The position numbers and the translations under genes were made by a program. Below the pieces are notes generated by a model. It saw nothing but the letters and a program-made list of their open reading frames with translations, had not been told where the DNA came from and made no database searches. Shown piece by piece: positions 34,963 to 44,964 of a stretch of 64,000 bases of DNA (within the stretch, counting starts at the first letter, position 1; every line of letters begins with the position of its first letter). The stretch is taken from positions 62,001 through 126,000 of the IMG/VR virus record IMGVR_UViG_3300042391_001376. One strand, given 5' to 3'.

Positions 34963-35838
34963 TCATCCCTGGGTTAAGGCTCCGACTAATCGCAATACCT
35001 CAGCAGCGTTTTGATTGTTAGCATAATCTTTAGACGCTAAATTAGCTAAATCTTCTCTCAAGAATGGTAAATATAAATTTGCCATTCTGGTAGCTATATC
35101 GGTTGACTCTAATGGATTATATATCTTTTCTCTAAGCTTTTCATTTGCGCTACCATGGCCATACCAACCGAGGTAGCTATACCTAACTCCGCTTTCTACG
35201 GGCAACACTTGATGAGTAGCTATATAATTGCTTGGGAACATCAATATATCACCTTTTTTAGGCTTATATTTTATATTTAAATAATTAAAATAATGCTCTC
35301 CACCAATATAGTCATCGTTCACATACACTACAGAACCAACTACATTCTTCGCAGCGAGTTGCATTTTCGGTTCTTCTAGACCAAAGATGTAGTCACAACT
35401 ATTATCGGAATGTGGGCCCAAGTATGACCCAGGACCATAGGATACAACATGCCCCTTGGATCTCCACCATATACACTTAAACAACATAGGGTATTCCATT
35501 ATATATTGAAGTAAACACTTATATTTTATATCTTCGATAAAAGCTAACAAAACAATTGATTCAAGAGATTTATCTTCATGTATCTCTATGCTCCTAAAGG
35601 GCATTTCGTTGACGGTTCTTTCGTTAAAATAATAACCACTTCTATTTATATAACAGGGCGCACCAGTGTCAGGGTCGATTGATGGTTTGTACATGTTTTC
35701 TTTTTCTCTCAATATATGGCCGCTAGCCCATTCGACAAAGTAGTCCCAATCTACGTCCAAGACTTGTTCAAAAAGCAATACTCCGTCTCCCAACTTCTTT
35801 GGAGATACTTTTTTATAATTGAACTTTTCCTTCAACAT
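34963..35838 (-). CDS. 2OG-Fe(II) oxygenase (prolyl 4-hydroxylase-like)
   Basis: HSD...YVNDDYIGGE...FPSNY..THQV..VESGVRYS. Confidence 0.85.
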   Translation of the reverse strand: MLKEKFNYKKVSPKKLGDGVLLFEQVLDVDWDYFVEWASGHILREKENMYKPSIDPDTGAPCYINRSGYYFNERTVNEMPFRSIEIHEDKSLESIVLLAFIEDIKYKCLLQYIMEYPMLFKCIWWRSKGHVVSYGPGSYLGPHSDNSCDYIFGLEEPKMQLAAKNVVGSVVYVNDDYIGGEHYFNYLNIKYKPKKGDILMFPSNYIATHQVLPVESGVRYSYLGWYGHGSANEKLREKIYNPLESTDIATRMANLYLPFLREDLANLASKDYANNQNAAEVLRLVGALTQG

Positions 35839-35878
35839 TATGATGCCATCCTGACTGTATCCGATATGCCTAATTGTA

Positions 35879-36328
35879 TCACAATAATTTAAGTTGAGCT
35901 TTCTTTAAGTGGTCATAATTTTCTTTTTTTATATATTTTGAAAAGCAAAATAAATTGGCAGTAAACACTTCCGGCGATAAAACTTTATCGTGGTTATACT
36001 GGGGCTTCCACCTCACCGCATTGTGAAATTTATCAAGTAAATATATAGTCCCTCTACCATAGGCTCCCTGCTTCACCTTCCTGTCTATGGGGTTAATCCT
36101 ATAAATGTAATATGAATTACCATTATCTATGCTATCTAAAAAGCCATTATCAGAATCTATATTCAAGATTCTTTTATCCATTTTATATAAAAGAGATTTT
36201 ATAGCCAATGAAGAAAAATTTTCTACGTTTACAATAAGCTCGATACTTCCGCTAATGTGGAGAGAGTTATTGCTGGTGGTGCAGTATGAATAGCTGTTTA
36301 GCTTTGGTTCTAGAAAAAACGTATCCAT
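35879..36328 (-). CDS. Hypothetical protein
   Basis: 149-aa ORF in the operon. Confidence 0.55.
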   Translation of the reverse strand: MDTFFLEPKLNSYSYCTTSNNSLHISGSIELIVNVENFSSLAIKSLLYKMDKRILNIDSDNGFLDSIDNGNSYYIYRINPIDRKVKQGAYGRGTIYLLDKFHNAVRWKPQYNHDKVLSPEVFTANLFCFSKYIKKENYDHLKKAQLKLL

Positions 36329-36343
36329 ATTTATATTATGATA

Positions 36344-37015
36344 TTAGATTATCCCTAATATCATATCGTATAACTTATCTAATTCATTTAATTCTAAAGT
36401 AAAATTATTTAGAATGTATTGCTCAATAGTGTCATTGGCCGTAGAATTATGACCCGGTATATTAATTAATTTATTCTCAAATTTATAATTACTAATATTT
36501 TCTATATTAAATTTTTTTCTAATGTCTTCCATCAAATTGTGGGAGCTATAAAGCAAAGCATCAAATGTGGCAATAAAAAAATTATTCTTATATTTATCCT
36601 TCGCATTTAAAATATATCGAAAGTATTCCAAATGGGTGTCTAGGATGTGATCTATTGTTTCTTTGAAAATCATAGAACGTATATAAGCGTCCAAAGTTTT
36701 TTCATCTTTATATATATGTTCAATGTTATCTTTTTTATTCTGATAAGACACCAATGAAGATGCTGTCCCCAAGCTTCTTCTTAAAGTAACTACGCAGGGG
36801 ATACCTTTTGACAGGCTTCTTTCAATATTGGATACTTCATGAGTTAAGGCTCTATTTATAGAGATGGTAGGAAAAGTTTCCAATAAAAGTTTTCTAAGGC
36901 TATTATTGCCTTGGCGCTGAAAACCATCAACGCAAAAAAGATGTGTACTTTTACTACTTATAGGTCTGGTAAAATTAAATAAATTATAATAACTTCTTAT
37001 ATCTACTGTGTCCAT
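36344..37015 (-). CDS. Sulfotransferase-fold (P-loop) protein
   Basis: DGFQRQGNNSLRKLL resembles the 5'-PSB motif; VVTLRR.....SS resembles the 3'-PB motif. Confidence 0.5.
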   Translation of the reverse strand: MDTVDIRSYYNLFNFTRPISSKSTHLFCVDGFQRQGNNSLRKLLLETFPTISINRALTHEVSNIERSLSKGIPCVVTLRRSLGTASSLVSYQNKKDNIEHIYKDEKTLDAYIRSMIFKETIDHILDTHLEYFRYILNAKDKYKNNFFIATFDALLYSSHNLMEDIRKKFNIENISNYKFENKLINIPGHNSTANDTIEQYILNNFTLELNELDKLYDMILGII

Positions 37016-37068
37016 GTAAGACCAAACTCTAACTCATCCATAGATTACCAAATCTGCAACACAAAGAC

Positions 37069-37866
37069 TTAGTCTTTGATTATTATGGTAGTCCCCTGAA
37101 GAGATGAAATATGATAAAAGCATATATTATCAATTTTTCTAAGATTTTCATGCATAACATAATACGGTGACATCAGCTGCATATTCAAGCTTTTTGAAGA
37201 ATTTGAATTTGATGCCCCATATGTAGTCATCAAATCGCCACTTGCACCAAGAATTATTGTTCCGCCACTTGCCATAGAATCTATTAATTTAAGAAAAATA
37301 TCATCATCAAAATAACTGACTAATATTTCTGCCGTTGTTAAGATCAGGTCTAAATCTTTCGGGCCCTCTCCATTTGCTATATCTATCAAATTCACAACAT
37401 TAAAAGTTGTTTCCTCTTCATCATAAAACTCTTCTAGTCTATTTAACCAGTAGTCATTGGATACAAAAACATTTTCTCCACAGAAAGTAGATAAGAAATT
37501 ACTCTTAGCATCTCCTCCGCTACCAATCAATAGCGTCCTGTTTGGTTTTATCATTCTAAATAACATTTCGCTTATTACATCACTATACAACAACACATTT
37601 GTGAGTATCGGCATTTTTGCAACTAGTAATTCAGGCCTTCGGATTTCTCCGTACCCATAATTGGTTGATTTTATAGATCTATCCATACCAAGGGAGATTT
37701 CATTTTCCACAATTTTACTATTGATTAATGCTTGTTCTTCAATTGATAAAGAACCTGCTAACTTTGTTTTAGAAAGATTATAACCACCTTTTATAATATC
37801 AACCCAGGTTGGGGCGACCCATTTGCCCTGTGCATAATCCGTGATTCTGTTTTGTTCTTCTAACAT
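37069..37866 (-). CDS. Class I SAM-methyltransferase-like protein
   Basis: TLLIGSGG motif I, DLDLIL, LIDSMASGGTIIL. Confidence 0.5.
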   Translation of the reverse strand: MLEEQNRITDYAQGKWVAPTWVDIIKGGYNLSKTKLAGSLSIEEQALINSKIVENEISLGMDRSIKSTNYGYGEIRRPELLVAKMPILTNVLLYSDVISEMLFRMIKPNRTLLIGSGGDAKSNFLSTFCGENVFVSNDYWLNRLEEFYDEEETTFNVVNLIDIANGEGPKDLDLILTTAEILVSYFDDDIFLKLIDSMASGGTIILGASGDLMTTYGASNSNSSKSLNMQLMSPYYVMHENLRKIDNICFYHISSLQGTTIIIKD

Positions 37867-38145
37867 TTAGATACCCGATTCGTTTATTTTTGCTGCATAA
37901 AGCTTATAATTGTATAAATTATTAATTATTTTCATAATTAATACTTTTCTTAATCTTTGAGTTTCTGGTTCGATATAATCCTGAGACATAATTCTATCTT
38001 GATATGGATATATTTCATTAACTTTTTCTATAAATACATCTATTTCTATGCTAGCATAATCTTGTTCTGCTAGTCCTATTTCTAGACATATCTTATCTAA
38101 TCTCGATTTTAGATAAGATGTATATTCTGTAGGGTTAAATTTCAT
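37867..38145 (-). CDS. Small helical hypothetical protein
   Basis: ORF with AGGAG RBS. Confidence 0.6.
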   Translation of the reverse strand: MKFNPTEYTSYLKSRLDKICLEIGLAEQDYASIEIDVFIEKVNEIYPYQDRIMSQDYIEPETQRLRKVLIMKIINNLYNYKLYAAKINESGI

Positions 38146-38154
38146 TTTTAGCTC

Positions 38155-38328
38155 CTATGACCAAGGATCTGAATATACTTGGAATAAATATAAATTAAAT
38201 TCTTCATCTATTGGTATTCTGCCCTGGCCTTGTACCTGATTAGGTTTATCGCTTTTTTTTACATAACTTTTTGTAGCGCTATTATATTTCAGATTTTCTA
38301 ACGCAGAAAAATTCATAAATAATGTCAT
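38155..38328 (-). CDS. Small hypothetical protein (57 aa)
   Basis: Not in track. MTLFMNFSALE...SDPWS* fills the gap and is coupled to the upstream stop (TAATG). Confidence 0.5.
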   Translation of the reverse strand: MTLFMNFSALENLKYNSATKSYVKKSDKPNQVQGQGRIPIDEEFNLYLFQVYSDPWS

Positions 38329-38567
38329 TATGCAACCGTGTTTAATAAATTTTTTAAAATTGCGATATTATTTTCAAGCATCTTGTAAGTTCCTTCTTCA
38401 TTAGAGCTAGAATATTCATCAGGTAGAATAACACCATTCGTATATGCGTCTTCTGGATCGAGACCCAAGATCCTTGCCACTCTATATATATGAAGTTTCT
38501 TTTGGTGTATAACTTCATCTGTTAAATGCTGCTTTAATTCTTCTGGGATACTGTCAAAAATTGCCAT
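38328..38567 (-). CDS. Small helical hypothetical protein
   Basis: 79-aa ORF. Confidence 0.6.
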   Translation of the reverse strand: MAIFDSIPEELKQHLTDEVIHQKKLHIYRVARILGLDPEDAYTNGVILPDEYSSSNEEGTYKMLENNIAILKNLLNTVA

Positions 38568-38597
38568 AATGTATAGGTTTCCTTTTTGCGGGTAGTA

Positions 38598-38849
38598 TTA
38601 TTCAAGTTCTGCAATTAAAGATAATAAATCTTTATACACTTCTACAATTTCCTGTAAATCGCGCTCTATGTGAGAAGCTGCGCTATTAGAATCAAAAGTT
38701 CCGGCCACCCAGGTGTCTATATCAAAAGAACTGTTAATGCCCAATTGAGCGGTTAGGGCAAACATTCTATTCGCTATGTATCTTTTGGCCACTTGAAGCT
38801 CTTGAAGCTTCTCTTCTGTCGTTAACAGATTAAAAATATCAGATGCCAT
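38598..38849 (-). CDS. Small helical hypothetical protein
   Basis: 83-aa ORF with AAGGA RBS. Confidence 0.6.
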   Translation of the reverse strand: MASDIFNLLTTEEKLQELQVAKRYIANRMFALTAQLGINSSFDIDTWVAGTFDSNSAASHIERDLQEIVEVYKDLLSLIAELE

Positions 38850-38884
38850 TTATATTCCTTTTGTTTTGGATTCTTGTAATTTAT

Positions 38885-38891
38885 ATAGTAA
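38885..38891 (-). promoter_or_regulatory. Putative late promoter TTACTAT
   Basis: 36 nt upstream of the 38849 start. Confidence 0.55.
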
Positions 38892-38930
38892 CTACTCAAA
38901 GAAAAATGTTATAAAAAATACCTATAAAAT

Positions 38931-39635
38931 CTATTGTTCTGGCGAATTAAGGTTAGGTAGGCCAGAGTACTTTGGCCCTATCCTATCTCCGTCTGAATTA
39001 AGGCCAGTTTTGATTCCTTTAATCCAGGTCCATGGTTTTTCTATATTATTTCTAGATTTAAGGTAATTATATTTTTCTCTTTCTGCGACTAGTTCTGGAA
39101 AATCTGATCTATTAACAACTTCAAAGTTGACACTTGGCATCAGGGATGGGTCGAATATAGTAAAGAATATAAAGGGTTCTCCCTTTTTAAAGATAACAGG
39201 TTCATTTATTTTTGTGATAACCCAATTTGTTTGCAGTTCATCCGGCCACCAATCGCTTGGAATTGTTGCCGTCATAGGAGATGCCCCGTCAACATAGTAA
39301 TTTGGAGATCCAGTTGCCCACAAGTGATATGGAGATTCTGTATTTATTACCCATCCAGTAGCAAAAGAAATCATTCCATTAATATTTGAATGAGCAAAAT
39401 TCCAACCATTATGGACTCCACCGCTAATAATTTGAGCTGGGGAATTGCCGCCATTCCAGATAACAGTAACATCTTCGGGCAACACCATCTCCCAACCACT
39501 AACATTCGCAGTTGTGACTGGGGTACATTGATATGCATGCTTGTTGTATGTATTGTCCATCCAGTCACGTTTTATTCTAGATTGCTTAATTTCTACTGGA
39601 TTTTGAAGAGTTTTTGATAAAGTTATTTTTGTCAT
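38931..39635 (-). CDS. DUF6065-like protein
   Basis: RDWMD...HAYQCTP...AN..GW, GSPN, DWWP, FKKGEP recalled as family motifs. Confidence 0.6.
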   Translation of the reverse strand: MTKITLSKTLQNPVEIKQSRIKRDWMDNTYNKHAYQCTPVTTANVSGWEMVLPEDVTVIWNGGNSPAQIISGGVHNGWNFAHSNINGMISFATGWVINTESPYHLWATGSPNYYVDGASPMTATIPSDWWPDELQTNWVITKINEPVIFKKGEPFIFFTIFDPSLMPSVNFEVVNRSDFPELVAEREKYNYLKSRNNIEKPWTWIKGIKTGLNSDGDRIGPKYSGLPNLNSPEQ

Positions 39636-39652
39636 AATTATTATTATCCCTT

Positions 39653-40372
39653 CTATATTGCATGAACTATATAGTCGTTGTCTAATTTTTTAATATTTTT
39701 TAAATTAGATTTTGGATTTCTCATCTCTTTTCCGCCATTATCACTCCCTGTATATGGGTAATGAAATCTTGAATTATAGTCAAACATAGTAACCGCTGAG
39801 TACTTTACTCCAGATTTAACGGGTAGTGCCTCATGCATGAAAATAAAATTAGATGGAAATAATATTATATCGCCTATTTTTGGTTTAATTTTAAATCCTA
39901 AATTATTAAAGGCTAACTCGCCACCTTCGTAATTGTCATTAAGATAGACTACAGTAGAAACCGTGCTGGAATAACTGAAACCGTCATCTCCATGCTGTTT
40001 AAAATGTTGACCAATTCCATATTTGATGTAGTTTATCTCTTCCATGTAATCCATTCTTATATTAAATCTTGTTTCGTAATCATAGAGACATTCTAGCACC
40101 GTTTCTTTAGTCTTCATGTATATATCAGTTAGCTCAGGTATGTCTTCTGTAATTGAATTTAATATTGATTCAGAAATGTGAAAATCATAACAATTTCTAT
40201 AAGATTTTATATAGTCGCCATCGCCAGTAGTGGCTTCTTTCCACTTGTTATGCCCGGTGTTGTTTTTGCTTAATACATTTTCTAGGGCCTCTATAATTAA
40301 ATCACTATTTTTTAAAGCATTCCTATATAACACTATGCCAAATCTTTTGTCTAAGATATACTGAATATCCAT
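39653..40372 (-). CDS. 2OG-Fe(II) oxygenase (prolyl 4-hydroxylase-like)
   Basis: HGD...YLNDNYEGGEL...HEALPVKSGVKYS. Confidence 0.85.
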   Translation of the reverse strand: MDIQYILDKRFGIVLYRNALKNSDLIIEALENVLSKNNTGHNKWKEATTGDGDYIKSYRNCYDFHISESILNSITEDIPELTDIYMKTKETVLECLYDYETRFNIRMDYMEEINYIKYGIGQHFKQHGDDGFSYSSTVSTVVYLNDNYEGGELAFNNLGFKIKPKIGDIILFPSNFIFMHEALPVKSGVKYSAVTMFDYNSRFHYPYTGSDNGGKEMRNPKSNLKNIKKLDNDYIVHAI

Positions 40373-40392
40373 AACTTGATTTACCAGCCCTT

Positions 40393-40428
40393 TTGATATA
40401 TAATGATCTAATCGAATTATTATATCAC
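40393..40428. promoter_or_regulatory. Pair of oppositely oriented sigma70-like -10 elements
   Basis: TGATATATAAT on + and TGTGATATAAT on - between the two divergent oxygenase genes. Confidence 0.45.
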
Positions 40429-40441
40429 AGGAGAAGCACTG

Positions 40442-41062
40442 ATGACAAATGCTCCAGAATTTAATATATTACCAGACCATTTTGGAAAGGGTCCAGAAAA
40501 TATATATACTTTTCAAAATTTTATTGAAAAAGACGACTTAAAAAGCATAAATGATTTTGTAGCAAATATAAAAATTTGGGATAATAATAGCAAAAGCGTG
40601 AGTTATGCAGATGGTTCGAGTAGATACAGTGCTGAGCTTTGGCACGACCGAATGTGTAGTGGGGAAATAATAAAATCTTTAAGTCCTGATATCTATAATT
40701 TAATAGATTCTTATATTATAAAAATGCAACATATCGCAGAAGAAATATTTAACTGCAAACTAAAAAAAAGACCTCCAGTAGTTGTTTGCTGGAGACCAAG
40801 TGATATGCAATTGCCTCACGCAGACAAACAGTTGCAAGATGGAAGACCAAATGCATTCCCCGATTATGATTTAAACTCATTATTTTATTACAATGAAGAT
40901 TTTGAGGGCGGTGAACTATATTACCCACAACACGTTAAAAAAATAATTCCTAAAGCTGGTTTAGCCGTTCTGCATCCGGGAGATATAAATTATTTACATG
41001 GAGTTACCCCAGTTCTTTCTGGACGTAGATGGGTTACTCCTTCGTTTTATACGGTCCAATAG
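40442..41062 (+). CDS. 2OG-Fe(II) oxygenase (prolyl hydroxylase-like)
   Basis: HAD...YYNEDFEGGEL...HGVTPVLSGRR; AGGAG RBS; the only credible plus-strand gene. Confidence 0.85.
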   Translation: MTNAPEFNILPDHFGKGPENIYTFQNFIEKDDLKSINDFVANIKIWDNNSKSVSYADGSSRYSAELWHDRMCSGEIIKSLSPDIYNLIDSYIIKMQHIAEEIFNCKLKKRPPVVVCWRPSDMQLPHADKQLQDGRPNAFPDYDLNSLFYYNEDFEGGELYYPQHVKKIIPKAGLAVLHPGDINYLHGVTPVLSGRRWVTPSFYTVQ

Positions 41063-41122
41063 TTAATAACTAGTAATTATAAAAAATAATTTAATTTATA
41101 TAACTACTGTTTTTATGCTATA

Positions 41123-41530
41123 TCAGCAAGGGAGGCAGCAGCCGCAGGTACCCTTATTGCAGAAGGAGATAGGAAAACCTGGCGGGGCAAAGAAACCTGG
41201 TGGGGAAAAGAAATCTGGCGGGGAAAAGAAATCTGGCGGGGCAAAGAAGCCTGGTGGGGAAAAGAAACTTGGTGGACCAAAAAAACTTGGTGGAGAAAAA
41301 ACTCCATAATCATAATTTATAGCTGTGCCAAGTAATACTACCGAAGTATCTGTTAAGGCTGTAACAACTTTGTCATTAAGATTGATGTCTTGAGTAGAAG
41401 TAGTTACAACGGTGCCCACAACATGGCCTGCCGCAATGATCGCAGCATTTGCTGCTGCCCTAGTAGTGCCTTGGGCTATTGCAGGCTTAGCGTTTTTTCT
41501 ATTTTGCTTTTTACCAGTATTTTCAGCCAT
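41123..41530 (-). CDS. PASTA-like domain + (FFxPPx)7 repeat + Cys-rich tail protein (copy 1)
   Basis: Sequence shows the hexapeptide repeats and a CNKGTCGCCLPC terminus. The N-domain is nearly identical to copy 2. Confidence 0.75.
   Translation of the reverse strand: MAENTGKKQNRKNAKPAIAQGTTRAAANAAIIAAGHVVGTVVTTSTQDINLNDKVVTALTDTSVVLLGTAINYDYGVFSPPSFFGPPSFFSPPGFFAPPDFFSPPDFFSPPGFFAPPGFPISFCNKGTCGCCLPC
41172..41303 (-). repeat. 18-nt coding tandem repeat (7 units)
   Basis: VFSPPS FFGPPS FFSPPG FFAPPD FFSPPD FFSPPG FFAPPG. Confidence 0.9.
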
Positions 41531-41531
41531 A

Positions 41532-43478
41532 TTATGCTACCAAATCTCCTAAAGCAACCCATGTATCAGTTGCGCGTTTAATAAGTGTAGCAGATGACCA
41601 CTGTGCACGCAACTTAAGACCAGGAGTACCGTTTAGTGTTACTCCTGCTCCTGCCGTAAGTGTGCACTGGCCAGCTAATGTTTGAAGGACTGTGAGAGTA
41701 GTCCCTACCGGAAAAGCTACTGAAGAGTTAGGTGGCAATGTCAGCGTATTGGCTGAAGCATTCCCCATTTCGATCATCTTTCCGCTGTCTGCTAATACTA
41801 GTGTATAGCTAGCTGCCTGAGCGTTAGTGACTGTGTCAGTAATAATTCTCTGGTAGTTAGTGCCGTCATTTGTGAATTCCCAACAGTCTGTTGTTTCATT
41901 CCAACGAAGTACTACGTTTGTTGAAGTTCCGCGTTCTACTTCGATCCCAGCATTAACCGATGGAGTGCCTGCTTCATTATTATTTAATACAATAATGTTG
42001 TCATCGATTGTTAAAGTCTCTGTGTTGATACTTGTGGTAGTTCCTGAAACTGTTAAGTTACCAGAAACGGTTAAGTTTCCAGCTACTGTTGGATTAGAAG
42101 TATTAACCCAAGCAGAACCGTTATATGATAGAAGTTGATTTGTTGCTGCTGTGGTAATTGTAACATCAGAAAGATCTGTTATCCCTAACGTCTCAGTGAG
42201 GCTAGCGTTAACCCAAGCTGAACCGTTATACTTAAGAAACTGACCACTTGCAACTGAAGTAATTGTCACTCCGCCAACGTCATCAATGTCATTGATAGTT
42301 GGGATTGAACCCCATTCAAGACCTGATGTAGCCGACGAGTTTGCTCTTAAAAAGTTTCCATCTGTTCCAACAGCTAAGCGATTAACTGTATTGTCAGCTG
42401 TTCCGACAACAAGATCACCTTTAGCATCGATTAGCGATTTTAGAACTGCGTTGTTGCCAGCATCAGAAACAGCTATTGTTGCAGCGTTTTGCACGAATGC
42501 GGTAGTTGCCAACTGAGTGTTGCTAGTAGCGTTTGCTGCGGTCGGTGCAGTAGGGACTCCAGTTAAACCTGGGCTAGCTAATGTTGCGTAACCAGTGAAT
42601 GATACGCTAGATGTCTCTTTGCCAGAAATTCTACCATAATCGTCTACAGTAAAATTGCTAACAAAACTGGTTGTATTTGCGCCTGAAGTATTTGATTGAG
42701 CTACTGTAGCAAGATCAATACTATCCGCATTAACAACTATTCTTGTTCCATTTGCAGAAACAACATCTATAGAATTGCCAGTCTTGACCATGCCGTCACC
42801 CACTACAAATGCTGCGGTACCGGTAAATTGAGAAAAGCTAAGATTATCTGTTCCTAAAACAATTGCATCGTTTGTACCAGTTCCAGTGGTAGTTAAGATA
42901 AATGCTTGACCACCATTGCTACTCCCAGCTACTACGTATACTGAATCGCCAGCAGAAACTTGACCAGCAACACTATTATTGGAATCCGCACGACGAGTTA
43001 ACACAAATGGGTTAGATGCATCGCCTTGTGCTGTAATTATGTATATTCCGTTTTGTGTTGCAGTTGCTTGGTTTTTTACCAAGATGCTTTTGCCAGTAGT
43101 TTGAGAAGTTCCATCAACAGTTAGTCTCCCATTGGCATCACCAGTGAGAGTTGCTCCTACTCCAGCAGTTCCGTTTGCATAAGTGCAAGTAGGAAGAGCT
43201 GCTGCTGTAGCATAGGCTACTGCATCATGCCAATTCAAACCAGCGGCTACCGTATCAACATAGCCTCTTGTGGCCAAGGATGTCGAACTTGTTCCTGCGT
43301 TTGAAGTAACAACAGAAGTAACGTTTAACGTACCATCTACCGCTATATTGCCAACAACTGTGCCAGACGAGTTTTTAAATTCTGCTAATGGAGCGCTTGC
43401 TCCAGTAGCTGCTTTGATGACAAAAGATTCATCATATACTGTAATTTCTGGTGCGGTTTCAATCCTTAGGCGGGCCAT
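41532..43478 (-). CDS. Tail fibre protein
   Basis: Thr/Ala/Gly-rich. Fibre modules LASP.LTG.PTAPTA, DL.DVTIT and ERGTSTNV. C-domain shared with 58017..60509. Confidence 0.8.
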   Translation of the reverse strand: MARLRIETAPEITVYDESFVIKAATGASAPLAEFKNSSGTVVGNIAVDGTLNVTSVVTSNAGTSSTSLATRGYVDTVAAGLNWHDAVAYATAAALPTCTYANGTAGVGATLTGDANGRLTVDGTSQTTGKSILVKNQATATQNGIYIITAQGDASNPFVLTRRADSNNSVAGQVSAGDSVYVVAGSSNGGQAFILTTTGTGTNDAIVLGTDNLSFSQFTGTAAFVVGDGMVKTGNSIDVVSANGTRIVVNADSIDLATVAQSNTSGANTTSFVSNFTVDDYGRISGKETSSVSFTGYATLASPGLTGVPTAPTAANATSNTQLATTAFVQNAATIAVSDAGNNAVLKSLIDAKGDLVVGTADNTVNRLAVGTDGNFLRANSSATSGLEWGSIPTINDIDDVGGVTITSVASGQFLKYNGSAWVNASLTETLGITDLSDVTITTAATNQLLSYNGSAWVNTSNPTVAGNLTVSGNLTVSGTTTSINTETLTIDDNIIVLNNNEAGTPSVNAGIEVERGTSTNVVLRWNETTDCWEFTNDGTNYQRIITDTVTNAQAASYTLVLADSGKMIEMGNASANTLTLPPNSSVAFPVGTTLTVLQTLAGQCTLTAGAGVTLNGTPGLKLRAQWSSATLIKRATDTWVALGDLVA

Positions 43479-43514
43479 ATTACTCCTATTTTGTTTATAA
43501 TAAAAACTAAACTA

Positions 43515-43521
43515 ATAGTAA
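43515..43521 (-). promoter_or_regulatory. Putative late promoter TTACTAT
   Basis: 37 nt upstream of the 43478 start. Confidence 0.55.
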
Positions 43522-43546
43522 TAGCCTTAATCAAATATATGTAAAA

Positions 43547-44155
43547 TTAATTCCACCAAGCAACTGCCGCATATTTTATACCTTTTGTAATTGGAGTACT
43601 TTGATGAAAGAAAGGCACCTGGGATGGAAAGAAGATTATATCTCCTTCTTTTGGCTTTAATTCTAGCCCAATTTTTGGGAATTCTAGAATCCCACCATCA
43701 TAATCATCATTTAAATACACCAAACCAGATATAACACGAGATAAAATTGGAGAAGTATCTAAGTGAACAGAAAAAAAATCTCCTAATTCGTATTTTAATG
43801 TGCTGTATCGATCTTGCTCATATGCCTTTATGGCAATGCCGATTCTCTGCGTGTAGTCTCTAAGAGCAGCAGAAAATGAACGATCTATAACATTAAAGAT
43901 TGAGCTAGATAAATAATTTACTTCATTAGACTCATTTGATCTAAAAAAATCTATTTGTTTACTACTTCTAAAAGAATTTACTTTTTCTTTAGTTTTATCC
44001 CCATGATAAATTAAGCTGTCTCTCCATGCGTATTCTGTATTTAATTCTGATAAAGTATTTATTTGGTTAAGAACTTTTTTTGGATTTTCTATACCATTAC
44101 GATAAATTACAATTGAATTATTTATTTTAATAAAACATTTACTGTCTTCATCCAT
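43547..44155 (-). CDS. 2OG-Fe(II) oxygenase (prolyl 4-hydroxylase-like)
   Basis: HLD...YLNDDYDGG...HQSTPITKGIKY. Confidence 0.85.
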   Translation of the reverse strand: MDEDSKCFIKINNSIVIYRNGIENPKKVLNQINTLSELNTEYAWRDSLIYHGDKTKEKVNSFRSSKQIDFFRSNESNEVNYLSSSIFNVIDRSFSAALRDYTQRIGIAIKAYEQDRYSTLKYELGDFFSVHLDTSPILSRVISGLVYLNDDYDGGILEFPKIGLELKPKEGDIIFFPSQVPFFHQSTPITKGIKYAAVAWWN

Positions 44156-44157
44156 AT

Positions 44158-44964
44158 TTATTGTGTTATTCTCTTTAAAAATTCTAACATTTTACCAGTA
44201 TATTTAATGCGTCCAAAATGGGTCAAGTTAATAGTTGGGTCAACCCAAATCTTTCCCCCCATCTTTTGCCAATATCTACAAAAACCATAATCCTCAGACA
44301 AGAATCTTCCATCATCATCTACATAAGAATTAAACAAAGCGTAGGCGTTTTCTGTTTCTTCGCCGTGCAAAGCTCCTGTATCATCTTTGTATTTTAACTT
44401 TTTGTACTTTTTAAACATTTTGTCAAATACTTGACGCTTGATAAGCATAAAGCCAGTTCCTGCTTCATAGCATTCGATTGCGCCATTATCAATATTTAAT
44501 TGAGTTTCTCCTGGCTTGGTCATATGGACTACATATCTTGTAGCGTATTCCATAAGATCTTGGGCCGGCAAGTCGGCTTGTGCACCTTCTTTTACTTTAT
44601 CCCAATTAATTTCCTTGATTGGATAAGACGCAGTCATGACATCCTTATCGTGCCACAATAACTTTAATATAGCTTCTTTGTCAAATTGAAGATCGACATC
44701 TATAAATACCATGTGGGTAAAGTCTGGACTACCCATGAACTTGGCAACCAAGTTGTTTCTTGCGCGGTTGATTAAAGAATCAGATATTGTGCAGACTGAA
44801 TACTTTAAACCTATTTCTTTAAAATAAAGACAAGCTTGCAAAAAGCTCATCATAAAAGGTTCTGTTACGTGTGAATCATAACATGGGAGAGCAAAAAATA
44901 CATTCCACTCTTGAAGCTTTTCTTTAGGGATTGTTATGTTTATTGGTTGTTCTTCTACAGGCAT
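44158..44964 (-). CDS. GT-A fold glycosyltransferase-like protein
   Basis: ARNNLV, FIDVD (DxD), GTGFMLIKR, LSEDYGFC, LTHFG. Confidence 0.75.
   Translation of the reverse strand: MPVEEQPINITIPKEKLQEWNVFFALPCYDSHVTEPFMMSFLQACLYFKEIGLKYSVCTISDSLINRARNNLVAKFMGSPDFTHMVFIDVDLQFDKEAILKLLWHDKDVMTASYPIKEINWDKVKEGAQADLPAQDLMEYATRYVVHMTKPGETQLNIDNGAIECYEAGTGFMLIKRQVFDKMFKKYKKLKYKDDTGALHGEETENAYALFNSYVDDDGRFLSEDYGFCRYWQKMGGKIWVDPTINLTHFGRIKYTGKMLEFLKRITQ

Follow-up and report, generated by a model that had tools for sequence, protein, structure and literature searches.

An aromatic-proline repeat protein encoded next to a tail-fibre gene and prolyl-hydroxylase-like enzymes in an uncultured lake-water phage

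An uncultured 205-kb lake-water phage encodes, directly after a tail-fibre gene, a small Phe-Phe-x-Pro-Pro-x repeat protein. In most related phage contigs with enough flanking DNA, this protein lies next to prolyl-hydroxylase-like enzymes and an uncharacterised partner (DUF6065), which suggests oxygen-dependent modification of the fibre apparatus, although the modification is inferred from sequence and fold rather than shown. The window analysed here is a stretch of 64,000 nucleotides (positions 62,001 to 126,000 of IMG/VR record IMGVR_UViG_3300042391_001376), and all coordinates refer to it (Table 1). An earlier note, made from the sequence alone, had described the repeat protein with its PASTA-like N-domain and Cys-rich tail, surrounded by four oxygenases, a GT-A enzyme and DUF6065-, methyltransferase- and sulfotransferase-like genes, and this observation was confirmed. 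Its interpretation, a cluster for proline hydroxylation followed by glycosylation or else a RiPP-like leader/core arrangement, yielding a hydroxyproline glycopeptide on the fibre tips, was only partly supported; the conserved core is smaller than proposed.

The repeat protein and its neighbouring genes

The repeat protein, rep135, comprises 135 aa and ends in ...VFSPPSFFGPPSFFSPPGFFAPPDFFSPPDFFSPPGFFAPPGFPISFCNKGTCGCCLPC. It contains seven PP-containing hexapeptide units, six of them perfect FFxPPx and one VFSPPS, and the last 13 residues hold five Cys. The underlying DNA is an 18-nt tandem repeat detected by Tandem Repeats Finder. The N-domain of rep135 does not itself reach the Pfam PASTA family, but its homologue P0013 does (E 1e-9) and aligns with it, while a further repeat locus, L138, gives a weak PASTA hit (E 5e-4). 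The gene immediately upstream is a tail fibre by PHROGs, and its stop codon lies 1 nt from the ATG of the repeat gene. In the 205-kb genome, rep135 and its paralogue rep2 are the only ORFs matching the repeat pattern, and only one other ORF, a 1634-aa frame with 11 scattered PP, reaches five PP dipeptides.

All four neighbouring oxygenases exceed the Pfam PF13640 cut-off and carry the invariant H-x-D...H triad. In an alignment of 52 sequences, including all five oxygenases of the window, the H127/D129/H180 triad is invariant and K190 is nearly invariant. The best solved relative of oxyJ, oxyA and oxyN by sequence is the prolyl 4-hydroxylase (P4H) of Bacillus anthracis, and oxyJ and oxyN also match vCPH of PBCV-1, whereas the closest solved relative of oxyK is the PKHD-type hydroxylase PiuC, with a weak resemblance to lysyl hydroxylases and P3H1. 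The AlphaFold2 model of oxyJ (pLDDT 90.6) matches prolyl hydroxylases in nearly all of the top 50 Foldseek hits, led by an algal P4H bound to (Ser-Pro)5 (E 1.8e-11).

The DUF6065 gene matches PF19541 (E 1.2e-39). Elsewhere, DUF6065 occurs fused to 2OG-FeII_Oxy_3, Cupin_8/JmjC_2, a GT1-like domain and an Stf0 sulfotransferase, the pattern expected of a shared partner of tailoring enzymes. The identities of the remaining genes are less secure. The GT-A has no Pfam hit but matches phrog_1574 and has Anp1/GT2-type clusters as Atlas neighbours, which is a lead only. The sulfotransferase-like gene is supported by Atlas neighbours alone, and the methyltransferase-like gene by sub-threshold TehB hits (E 0.015 and 0.025).

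Table 1. Features of the repeat-protein locus and of the paralogous module B within the 64,000-nt window.
Position	Strand	Feature	Remarks
34963-35838	-	oxyA, prolyl-4-hydroxylase-like oxygenase	Copy number varies from 1 to 5 in relatives
35879-36328	-	149-aa protein	No family match; present only in close relatives
36344-37015	-	Sulfotransferase-like protein (a lead only)	Found only in close relatives
37069-37866	-	Possible Rossmann-type methyltransferase	Weak
37867-38849	-	Four small ORFs (92, 57, 79 and 83 aa)	No family match; conserved in close relatives
38931-39635	-	DUF6065 protein	dUTPase-like beta-barrel fold; recurrent companion of the oxygenases
39653-40372	-	oxyJ, prolyl-4-hydroxylase-like 2OG-Fe(II) oxygenase	Core cassette member
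40442-41062	+	oxyK, PKHD/PiuC-like 2OG-Fe(II) oxygenase	Core cassette member
41123-41530	-	Repeat protein rep135	PASTA-like N-domain (about residues 15-75), seven xPPxFF units, tail C-x-K-G-x-C-x-C-C-x-P-C
41175-41299	-	18-nt tandem repeat array encoding the FFxPPx units	6.9 copies, 84% matches, score 145
41532-43478	-	Tail fibre, 648 aa	Last ~109 aa (41535-41861) form the conserved fibre C-domain that precedes repeat genes in relatives
43547-44155	-	oxyN, prolyl-4-hydroxylase-like oxygenase	Between the GT and the fibre gene
44158-44964	-	Anp1-like GT-A glycosyltransferase (phrog_1574)	Only in the closer lineage, where it is very conserved (87-97% identity)
54830-55507	-	Fifth PF13640 oxygenase	End of module B
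55811-56769	-	PF11397 (GT60, 'GlcNAc') glycosyltransferase	Collinear with an intact 312-aa homologue but in three frames, both junctions at CGG (56487 and 55967)
56763-57528	-	GNAT-like protein (57010-57528) and Cys-rich DUF6171 protein (56763-57077)	Module B
57591-58014	-	rep2, paralogue of rep135	Five FFxPPx units, a PPPPPC segment and a Cys tail; ATG at 58014 in one frame and body in the +1 frame, junction GGC CGG C at 57984-57990
58017-60509	-	Second fibre, 830 aa, with the same C-domain	Heads module B

A second, paralogous module (module B) lies at 54830-60509. Several late genes here, including the repeat gene and the PF11397 glycosyltransferase of that module, appear to need +1 frameshifts at the rare codon CGG. 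The PF11397 family contains the Skp1 Hyp-GlcNAc-transferase Gnt1 (PMC6939170), and PF11397 genes follow Cys-tailed repeat genes in all 9 loci found with that glycosyltransferase. The PF11397 gene of module B thus lends some support to glycosylation from outside the first locus.

Conservation of the cassette

The repeat protein, the prolyl-hydroxylase-like oxygenases and DUF6065 form a conserved cassette that recurs across many diverged phage contigs and is always tied to a tail-fibre C-terminal domain. The order fibre C-domain, repeat gene, oxyK-like, oxyJ-like, DUF6065 is kept at 35-60% protein identity in two sets of related loci (L007-L017 and L018-L055). In locus L059, from an unrelated HK97-type phage, the order is rearranged, with five oxygenases plus DUF6065 between two fibre-plus-repeat modules.

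Co-occurrence across phage genomes, which the earlier note had named as a check, was examined in two ways. A degenerate (FFxPPx)3 DNA pattern identified 80 IMG/VR loci, all of them in-frame repeat ORFs, of which 65 have an oxygenase and 56 have DUF6065. Of the 37 repeat ORFs with at least 4 kb downstream, 36 have an oxygenase in the locus and 34 have one within 4 kb. Among 57 loci chosen only by the fibre C-domain and with at least 4 kb downstream, 47 have both an aromatic-Pro ORF and an oxygenase, 7 have neither, 1 has only the repeat and 2 have only an oxygenase (Fisher p = 1e-6, odds ratio 164). These loci are evolutionarily related rather than phylogenetically independent, and the counts therefore overstate independence. 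One of the two loci in which no repeat was detected under the criterion used, L249, does carry a lower-proline (FSFTP)n repeat. In contrast, the GT-A, sulfotransferase-like and methyltransferase-like genes are confined to close relatives and occur in only 7, 0 and 2 of the 80 pattern-found loci, respectively, such that hydroxylation followed by glycosylation is at most lineage-specific.

The repeat is the common element among the linked proteins, which range from 100 to 895 aa. Their N-domains are PASTA-like or FN3 (in some cases fn3 arrays), the repeats are (FFxPPx)n or (FPP[FYW])n, and the C-terminus is variable, being a bare '...FK' end, a Cys-rich tail, an S74 intramolecular chaperone or a Hint/intein-like domain. 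The S74 chaperone begins right after '...FK', the same end as in the short forms, and Hint/BIL domains begin right after the last Phe. Both imply a processed fibrous structural protein, and a fibre-associated, structural role fits these N- and C-domains.

Interpretation

The locus is best explained as one copy of a widespread phage cassette comprising, in order, a tail-fibre gene ending in a conserved ~100-aa C-domain, a gene for an aromatic-proline repeat protein, and two to nine prolyl-hydroxylase-like 2OG/Fe(II) oxygenases with one DUF6065 protein. In the most likely mechanism, which is held with no more than moderate confidence, the oxygenases would hydroxylate prolines of the Pro-Pro repeats late in infection, using O2, Fe(II) and 2-oxoglutarate, while DUF6065 would act as a docking or accessory subunit for these and other tailoring enzymes. 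The modified protein would be an extended polyproline-II-type stalk mounted on, or assembled with, the C-domain of the fibre, and its variable C-terminal piece would form or expose the distal tip. In this phage lineage, glycosyl and possibly sulfate transfer may follow, with the GT-A, the PF11397 glycosyltransferase of module B and the sulfotransferase-like gene as candidates, although these steps are not conserved parts of the system. The analysis establishes gene content, synteny, co-occurrence, fold class, catalytic residues and domain fusions, whereas the substrate relation, hydroxylation itself, proline as the target residue, virion location and any glycan are inferred. Co-folding of oxyJ, DUF6065, Fe and rep135 gave no usable model of the complex (score 0.00, partner pLDDT about 30). 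The repeats also lack Gly at every third residue and lack Ser-Pro3-5, and are neither collagen nor canonical extensin substrates.

Alternatively, the oxygenases and DUF6065 could act on something other than the repeat protein, such as the fibre itself, other virion proteins, host translation factors or ribosomal proteins (as bacterial PPHD and Tpa1/Ofd1 do), or small molecules, and could sit beside the repeat gene only because both belong to a mobile, hypervariable fibre-proximal island expressed late. Phage PF13640 oxygenases are common without repeat proteins, for example in cyanophage S-MbCM7 beside gp12 fibres. Related oxygenases occur in a cultured cyanophage next to short tail fibres with no repeat protein, DUF6065 or fibre C-domain within 12 kb, and the enzyme family therefore has other substrates. 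Oxygenase copy number also varies widely, from 1 to 9, and two fibre C-domain loci have oxygenases without a detected repeat. However, linkage follows the repeat rather than the fibre C-domain, as all 7 fibre C-domain loci without a repeat also lack oxygenases, and it survives rearrangement of gene order and swaps of the N- and C-domains, which leaves this reading possible but unlikely. Somewhat less likely still, the repeat protein may be the substrate of a different chemistry, such as beta-hydroxylation of Phe/Tyr/Asp/Asn, hydroxylation of the conserved C-terminal Lys, or other regio- and stereo-chemistries (3-Hyp, 3,4-dihydroxyproline) made by the several paralogues. Aromatic residues are as invariant as Pro in both repeat flavours, many family members end in F-K, oxyK is nearer to PiuC and weakly resembles lysyl hydroxylases and P3H1, and DUF6065 is also fused to JmjC/cupin hydroxylases, which modify Lys, Arg, His or Asn. 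Against this, the top sequence and fold matches of oxyJ, oxyA and oxyN are prolyl 4-hydroxylases, including enzymes that act on poly-Pro-type peptides.

The location of the repeat gene immediately downstream of a fibre gene is also typical of assembly factors, and the protein could be a non-structural fibre assembly chaperone, like Tfa or gp38-type chaperones, that would not be a virion component and whose modification would tune assembly. This is doubtful, as its S74 or Hint autoprocessing domains and fn3 arrays are features of exposed structural proteins, but this reading is compatible with hydroxylation and differs only in the final location of the protein, which is itself only inferred. 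The RiPP-like reading, in which the N-domain is a leader and the repeats plus Cys tail form a core peptide that is tailored, cleaved and released, does not fit and is very unlikely. The small size of rep135, its Cys-rich C-terminus, the nearby tailoring enzymes and the possibility that DUF6065 acts like a recognition element could be cited in its favour. However, relatives reach 895 aa with folded N-domains and carry S74 fibre chaperones or Hint domains at their C-termini, the gene is translationally coupled to a tail-fibre gene, and no RiPP maturase, leader peptidase or exporter family was found in the family searches.

Comparison with known systems

The C-terminal domains of many family members match bacterial intein-like (BIL/Hint; PDB 2lwy) and mini-intein profiles, with an N-terminal Cys and a C-terminal His-Asn. 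The two copies in the window lack this domain, and its position after a repeat in phage fibre-linked proteins turned up in no paper in a single full-text search on bacterial intein-like domains, phage and tail fibres. In trimeric phage fibres, including collagen-like ones, with a C-terminal S74 intramolecular chaperone, the arrangement is comparable to that of loci L012 and L092, where a Pro-rich repeat is followed by an S74 autocleaving chaperone. Together with the mimivirus collagen hydroxylase-glycosyltransferase L230, this fits the logic of modifying a viral structural repeat. However, Gly does not occur at every third residue, so this is not a collagen triple helix, and both tetrapeptide and hexapeptide periods exist. 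T-even gp38-type tip adhesins with polyglycine-II sandwich domains are, by analogy, also small proteins encoded just downstream of the distal fibre gene, with an N-terminal attachment domain followed by left-handed-helix-prone repeats with variable tips, but here the repeats are Pro- and aromatic-rich and are accompanied by oxygenases.

Among systems with a prolyl 4-hydroxylase, the Skp1 modification pathway of Dictyostelium and Toxoplasma couples the P4H PhyA to the GT60 enzyme Gnt1 (PMC6939170, PMC3515798). In module B, a P4H (6t8m is a fold match) plus a PF11397/GT60-family glycosyltransferase are likewise encoded beside the candidate substrate. Skp1, however, has a single Pro site in a globular protein rather than repeats, GT60 also contains Thr-directed enzymes, and the glycosyltransferase copy in the window needs two frame changes to be read. 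Algal and plant P4H act on hydroxyproline-rich glycoproteins or extensins, which are extended polyproline-II repeats that are then O-glycosylated, and Chlamydomonas Cr-P4H-1 with (Ser-Pro)5 (PDB 3gze) is the top fold match of oxyJ. The window has no Ser-Pro3-5 motif, its repeats being FFxPPx or FPPx, and glycosyltransferases are not conserved with the cassette. In chlorovirus PBCV-1, a virus-encoded P4H-type 2OG oxygenase (vCPH; 5c5t), which is among the best sequence and fold matches, occurs together with virus-encoded Pro-rich tandem repeats such as (Pro-Ala-Pro-Lys)n (Eriksson et al. 1999, cited in PMC7019647). PBCV-1 is a eukaryotic algal virus with a single enzyme and no DUF6065, and its repeats lack aromatic residues and are not linked to a fibre gene, whereas here there are 4-9 paralogous enzymes in a fixed cassette.

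Genomic context and gene content of the locus

The 204.9-kb IMG/VR virus record that contains the window (bases 62001-126000) is estimated to be 97% complete. It represents a myovirus-type phage with a tail-sheath gene, a DnaE-type polymerase, a ribonucleotide reductase, a portal and a terminase. Its TerL is only 37% identical to that of its best cultured relative, Moorella phage MTATph1, and is more distant from those of the 0305phi8-36-like jumbo phages. Near-identical DNA is present in many lake-water metagenomes. In contrast, megablast and tblastn searches with the region, the repeat protein (rep135), DUF6065 and a neighbouring 634-aa protein found nothing among 50,697 GenBank phage records, and no cultured close relative was found in that collection.

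The repeat gene encodes a protein with a basic N-terminus and a domain of ~60 aa, followed by the units VFSPPS, FFGPPS, FFSPPG, FFAPPD, FFSPPD, FFSPPG and FFAPPG, and it ends FPISFCNKGTCGCCLPC. At the DNA level, the repeats form an 18-nt tandem array with 6.9 copies. The stop codon of the upstream tail-fibre gene lies 1 nt from the ATG of the repeat gene. Four oxygenase genes flank the repeat gene. The coordinates of the other features are collected in the table below.

Coordinates of features and frame junctions in the window
Position	Strand	Feature	Observation
41123-41530	-	Repeat protein, rep135	135 aa
41532-43478		Tail fibre	Upstream of rep135
38931-39635		DUF6065 protein	E 1e-39
44158-44964		Candidate GT-A protein	268 aa; no Pfam match; phrog_1574; among Anp1/GT2-type clusters in the ESM Atlas
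36344-37015		Sulfotransferase-like protein	Nearest Atlas neighbours are sulfotransferase clusters
37069-37866		Methyltransferase-like protein	Only sub-threshold TehB-type hits; call could not be confirmed
58017-60509		Second fibre	Same C-domain as the first
57591-58014		Second repeat protein, rep2	Only other ORF in the genome matching the repeat pattern
56763-57077		DUF6171 protein	Small, Cys-rich (CxxC...CxxC)
56470-56769		PF11397 piece	E 1.7e-6
55935-56480		PF11397 piece	E 6.4e-12
54830-55507		Fifth PF13640 oxygenase	27.5 bits
46109-48256		DUF285-repeat protein	715 aa; Pfam E 2.6e-63 ("Mycoplasma DUF285"); between fibre genes; presumably another host-binding structural protein
1940-13027		Large ORF	3695 aa
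13866-18773		Large ORF	1635 aa
18773-25339		Large ORF	2188 aa
49671-54083		Large ORF	1470 aa; fibre-like
57984-58014		rep2 frame change	GGC CGG C; ATG at 58014
56487	-	CGG junction	Within the PF11397 gene
55967	-	CGG junction	Within the PF11397 gene
54591	-	CGG junction	Joins a 56-aa N-terminal ORF (54583-54753) to the 1470-aa fibre
45557	-	CGG junction	Joins ORFs 45492-45761 and 44987-45460
12980	-	CGG junction	Joins ORF 12921-13394 to the 3695-aa ORF

The earlier note had described a small protein with a PASTA-like N-domain, Pro-Pro hexapeptide repeats and a Cys-rich tail, surrounded by four prolyl-hydroxylase-like oxygenases, a GT-A enzyme, and DUF6065-, methyltransferase- and sulfotransferase-like genes. 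This description and its coordinates are correct, although the PASTA-like and methyltransferase-like labels are its weakest parts. The N-domain of rep135 has no match to the PASTA profile (PF03793). Among 24 aligned family members, only P0013, which aligns to rep135 at 37% identity, reaches the profile (E 1e-9), and a protein of another repeat-gene locus (L138; loci collected here carry L numbers) scores E 5e-4. The structural region as a whole is dominated by very large ORFs.

The aromatic-proline repeat-protein family

A homologue search with rep135 found 14 clusters, and a scan of IMG/VR found 17 loci. The family has two repeat flavours, a hexapeptide (FFxPPx)n and a tetrapeptide (FPP[F/Y/W])n. 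The N-terminal domains are either the PASTA-like domain or arrays of fn3 domains, the latter scoring above the Pfam cut-off. The C-termini vary. Many of the proteins simply end in F-K, and some have Cys-rich tails, as in the window. Others continue after F-K with a Peptidase_S74 intramolecular chaperone (E 9e-11), the self-cleaving trimerisation domain of phage fibres.

In many relatives (L007-L010, L059 and L080-L159; for example L093:7048-7578 and L083:8643-9143), the last Phe of the repeat is followed directly by a domain of ~165 aa that starts with Cys and ends with His-Asn. A profile of 21 such domains hits the bacterial intein-like (BIL) domain 2lwy (E 1e-7), the Pho RadA intein and the gp41-1 intein, while Pfam Intein_splicing or Hint_2 is found in 14 and 8 of the 21. 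The residue after the Asn is mostly not a nucleophile, which suggests C-terminal autoprocessing rather than splicing. The copy in L059 ends in THN-K, echoing the F-K terminus of the short forms. Full-text searches found no paper on BIL domains in tail fibres.

Other proline-repeat flavours follow the same fibre C-domain, namely (TPPPIIAV)n, (FSFTP)n, (FFP/FFPP)n and (PPPF)n in L243, L249, L255 and L238. The first three have oxygenases nearby, while L238 has none. Taken together, the features of the family are those of processed, exposed structural proteins, not of RiPP precursors.

Co-occurrence of the repeat, the oxygenases and DUF6065

The absence of genomic co-occurrence had been named in advance as a result that would count against the proposed cluster, and co-occurrence was examined in four selections of loci. 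In loci selected by homology to the repeat protein, the order fibre C-domain, repeat gene, oxyJ/oxyK-like oxygenases (named after two of the four that flank rep135) and DUF6065 holds down to 35-45% identity. In loci selected by DUF6065, every locus with enough upstream DNA has the fibre C-domain and a repeat ORF. A degenerate DNA pattern for three FFxPPx units matched at least 119 stretches, of which 80 loci were retrieved. All are in-frame repeat ORFs; 65 have an oxygenase, 56 have DUF6065 and 56 have the fibre C-domain. Of 37 repeat ORFs with at least 4 kb downstream, 34 have an oxygenase within 4 kb, often 9-1300 nt from the stop codon. Finally, at least 586 IMG/VR loci matched the fibre C-domain alone. 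Among 57 of these with at least 4 kb downstream, 47 have both an aromatic-Pro ORF and an oxygenase, 7 have neither, 1 has the repeat only and 2 have an oxygenase only (Fisher p = 1e-6). As the loci are related to each other, this p-value is descriptive and not a probability.

The most divergent family member, P0013, lies in a phage with an HK97-type head module, in which five oxygenases and DUF6065 sit between two fibre-plus-repeat modules. Linkage survives rearrangement. In contrast, the GT-A, the PF11397 glycosyltransferase, the sulfotransferase-like gene and the methyltransferase-like gene occur in only 7, 2, 0 and 2 of the 80 pattern-found loci.

Prolyl-hydroxylase-like oxygenases

All four oxygenases of the locus score 29.5-52.6 bits against Pfam PF13640 (P4Hc), for which the curated cut-off is 27, and the fifth oxygenase also exceeds it. 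In an alignment of 52 sequences that includes all five window oxygenases, the iron triad H127, D129 and H180 is invariant, and K190, a basic residue at the position that binds the C5 carboxylate of 2-oxoglutarate (2OG), is at least 90% conserved. The best solved relative of oxyJ, oxyA and oxyN is Bacillus anthracis P4H (E 5e-5, 7e-4 and 3e-7, respectively), and oxyJ and oxyN also hit PBCV-1 vCPH. The best solved relative of oxyK is the PKHD-type hydroxylase PiuC. An AlphaFold2 model of oxyJ, the only one of the enzymes to which the fold evidence applies, has a pLDDT of 90.6 and a double-stranded beta-helix fold closest to known prolyl hydroxylases. Nearly all of its top 50 Foldseek PDB hits are P4H or PHD enzymes (E 1.8e-11 to 1.8e-8; TM 0.45-0.59 by query and 0.49-0.72 by target), including algal P4H with (Ser-Pro)5, Pseudomonas PPHD, vCPH, Dictyostelium PhyA, PHD2 and human C-P4H-II. 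The label "prolyl-hydroxylase-like" is therefore well founded as a class, with activity and target remaining inferences. Co-folding of oxyJ, DUF6065, Fe and rep135 gave no answer and is not used as evidence.

DUF6065

The predicted structure of the DUF6065 protein (pLDDT 87.9) has a dUTPase-like beta-barrel, although the Foldseek match is weak (E about 4e-4; TM by target 0.6-0.68). An exhaustive profile search found 1704 representatives. Long members are fusions with 2OG-FeII_Oxy_3 (PF13640), Cupin_8/JmjC_2, a UDPGT/EryCIII-type (GT1-type) glycosyltransferase and an Stf0 sulfotransferase, as seen in different proteins among the representatives P0348, P0356, P0327 and P0341. A domain fused alternately to hydroxylases, a glycosyltransferase and a sulfotransferase is best read as a shared docking or accessory module of tailoring enzymes. 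This also gives some indirect credit to the glycosyltransferase and the sulfotransferase-like gene of the window as lineage-specific add-ons. A scan of genome contigs for the bacterial context of DUF6065 returned only phage contigs binned into MAGs, and full-text searches found no paper on the family.

A second repeat module

The second repeat gene, rep2, lies downstream of the second fibre gene. It is followed by a GNAT-like gene, the DUF6171 gene, the PF11397 glycosyltransferase gene, a small ORF and the fifth oxygenase gene. In a lake strain about 1.4% diverged over the flanks, the 3′-end of rep2, comprising the Cys tail and the last repeats, and the spacer after it (57528-57708) are replaced by 167 unrelated bases. 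The tail is a hypervariable cassette.

The PF11397 gene is split over three frames, whereas its homologue in locus L016 is intact (E 1.6e-23). No PF11397 match lies inside 34963-44964. All nine IMG/VR loci found with this glycosyltransferase have the order fibre, Cys-tailed repeat protein, DUF6171, glycosyltransferase, and in each of the five that were laid out the DUF6171 gene lies directly before that of the glycosyltransferase. DUF6171 also accompanies repeat-protein modules in 20 of the 80 pattern-found loci. In L076-L079 (for example L078:7001-7991), a lineage whose glycosyltransferase is 64% identical to that of L016, the gene is also interrupted, but at a different position (between aa ~159 and 181).

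Candidate +1 frameshifts at CGG codons

The conserved body of rep2 has no ATG, GTG or TTG upstream of an internal GTG at 57899, which would cut off part of the N-domain. The upstream ATG opens the frame one base behind, and the two frames meet at GGC CGG C. The same layout occurs in about 20 distinct repeat genes (including those of L012-L016, L026, L028, L036, L056, L075-L079, L092, L110, L129 and L134), in which an upstream ATG ORF encodes the conserved N-peptide. The 0-frame codon at the junction is always CGG, preceded by varying codons, and the +1 codon is always GGN, matching the Gly of unshifted homologues. L016 (1797-2237) appears to have two such sites in tandem. CGG is the rarest sense codon of this genome, at 0.35 per 1000.

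The two frame changes of the PF11397 gene are also CGG sites, and their +1 reading restores the sequence of the homologue (..RID-GHMRFK.. at the first, 56487). An assembly error was rejected as an explanation, because contigs from four separate lake samples, one of them a strain about 1.4% diverged, show no indels at either junction. The reading of this gene as a simple pseudogene is doubtful, because both junctions are CGG sites whose +1 reading restores the sequence of the homologue. Of the further junctions, that of the 1470-aa fibre is kept with an invariant CGG in eight diverged loci, while at 45557 relatives have a single continuous gene with ATT GGT TTT. Gene callers would annotate such loci as split genes or pseudogenes.

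In + strand genes at about 150-204 kb of the genome, which are probably early, in-frame CGG codons look ordinary, as the 0 frame continues and the +1 frame is closed. In - strand late genes, in-frame CGG codons mostly lie close to the 5′-end of the open frame, possibly upstream of the start codon, or at frame junctions. The phage encodes seven tRNAs, including Gly-UCC and Arg-UCU. The pattern looks like programmed +1 frameshifting at a "hungry" codon in late genes, but this is unproven, and a genome-wide scan for start-less frame overlaps was too noisy to give a statistic.

Interpretation

The cassette is real, non-trivial and apparently undescribed. The central idea of the earlier note, that P4H-like enzymes decorate a Pro-repeat protein associated with fibres, is the best-supported reading, although it remains an inference. 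Its interpretation is thus supported only in part, as the glycosylation, methylation and sulfation components are peripheral and the RiPP alternative does not fit. In the proposed mechanism, the oxygenases would hydroxylate Pro in the Pro-Pro repeats, with DUF6065 assisting in presenting the substrate. The product would be an extended stalk attached to the fibre C-domain, and the removal of C-terminal S74 or Hint domains, or the cross-linking of Cys tails, would mature the distal end. Glycosylation would be optional. The linkage of the genes, the enzyme class and the conserved catalytic residues follow directly from the sequences and the oxyJ model, whereas catalysis of peptidyl-proline hydroxylation, the substrate, hydroxyproline as a sugar acceptor and presence on the virion fibre are inferred. 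The mechanism as a whole is considered about as likely as not. That the repeat protein is the substrate is somewhat more likely than not, that Pro is the modified residue somewhat less so, and the addition of a glycan in this phage is unlikely.

The main rival is that the oxygenases have another target and are merely co-resident with the repeat gene in a fibre-proximal island. In the cultured Synechococcus phage S-MbCM7 (KF156338.1, 30553-55068), 2OG-Fe(II) oxygenases about 32% identical to oxyJ sit directly after gp12 short-tail-fibre genes, with no repeat protein, DUF6065 or fibre C-domain within 12 kb. Several GenBank records label these oxygenases "ferrochelatase" or "DNA endonuclease V", which looks like mis-annotation. 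The alternative reading of the repeat protein as a RiPP precursor, with the N-domain as leader and the repeats as core, is rejected, since relatives reach 895 aa and carry fn3, PASTA, S74 and Hint domains, and no RiPP enzyme families were found in the cluster.

A more far-reaching possibility, which is not excluded but is considered unlikely, is that a widespread and previously undescribed phage system makes an O2-, Fe- and 2-oxoglutarate-dependent hydroxyproline-rich stalk at tail-fibre tips. It would combine a new aromatic-proline repeat fold, (FFxPPx)n or (FPPx)n, with batteries of P4H paralogues that modify it, DUF6065 as a dUTPase-fold docking module shared by hydroxylases, glycosyltransferases and sulfotransferases, and S74 or Hint self-cleavage that matures the C-terminus. 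In addition, this phage lineage would express several late genes, including the second repeat gene, its GT60 glycosyltransferase and two fibre genes, through programmed +1 frameshifts at CGG, a form of sense-codon recoding.

Phage 2OG-Fe(II) oxygenases (phrog_61) are among the commonest phage "auxiliary" genes, and are the phage proteins that most often resemble a human protein, EGLN3 (PMC12774648). No described substrate for them, and no paper on phage prolyl hydroxylation of fibre proteins, was found in a small number of full-text searches. The cassette offers a concrete, testable candidate substrate for a large subset of this family. If the mechanism is right, construction of the host-recognition apparatus would depend on oxygen, iron and 2-oxoglutarate. 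The cassette also gives a first functional context for DUF6065, and defines a new repeat type and an unexpected use of intein-like domains in phage fibre-linked proteins. The CGG junctions, if they are programmed, would be a new recoding signal that gene callers currently misread as pseudogenes.

Comparison with known systems

The oxygenases belong to a known class, the P4H-type 2OG/Fe(II) enzymes, but the repeat differs from the established substrate types with which it was compared. Collagen has Gly at every third residue, whereas the units of rep135 are F-F-[S/A/G]-P-P-[S/G/D], and relatives have L, R, D, N or T at the sixth position or a 4-residue period FPP[FYW]. Membership of the collagen type is therefore rejected on motif grounds. 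The same applies to the extensin/HRGP type, as Ser-Pro(3-5) and (Ser-Pro)n motifs are absent and there are only Pro-Pro dipeptides flanked by aromatic residues. The resemblance is limited to Pro-rich tandem repeats next to a P4H. In Skp1-type glycosylation, a P4H is combined with the GT60 enzyme Gnt1, the Skp1 hydroxyproline GlcNAc-transferase. PF11397, found in the second module, corresponds to CAZy GT60, a family that also includes Thr-directed polypeptide GlcNAc-transferases (PMC6939170). As is expected of a tail-fibre tip accessory or adhesin, the repeat protein is encoded immediately downstream of, and is co-inherited with, a fibre gene. Of 81 distinct fibre C-domain ORFs in an earlier set of loci, most of them chosen for carrying the repeat, DUF6065 or the PF11397 glycosyltransferase, 76 are followed within 400 nt by a repeat ORF, and in loci chosen by the fibre C-domain alone, 48 of 57 have an aromatic-Pro ORF.
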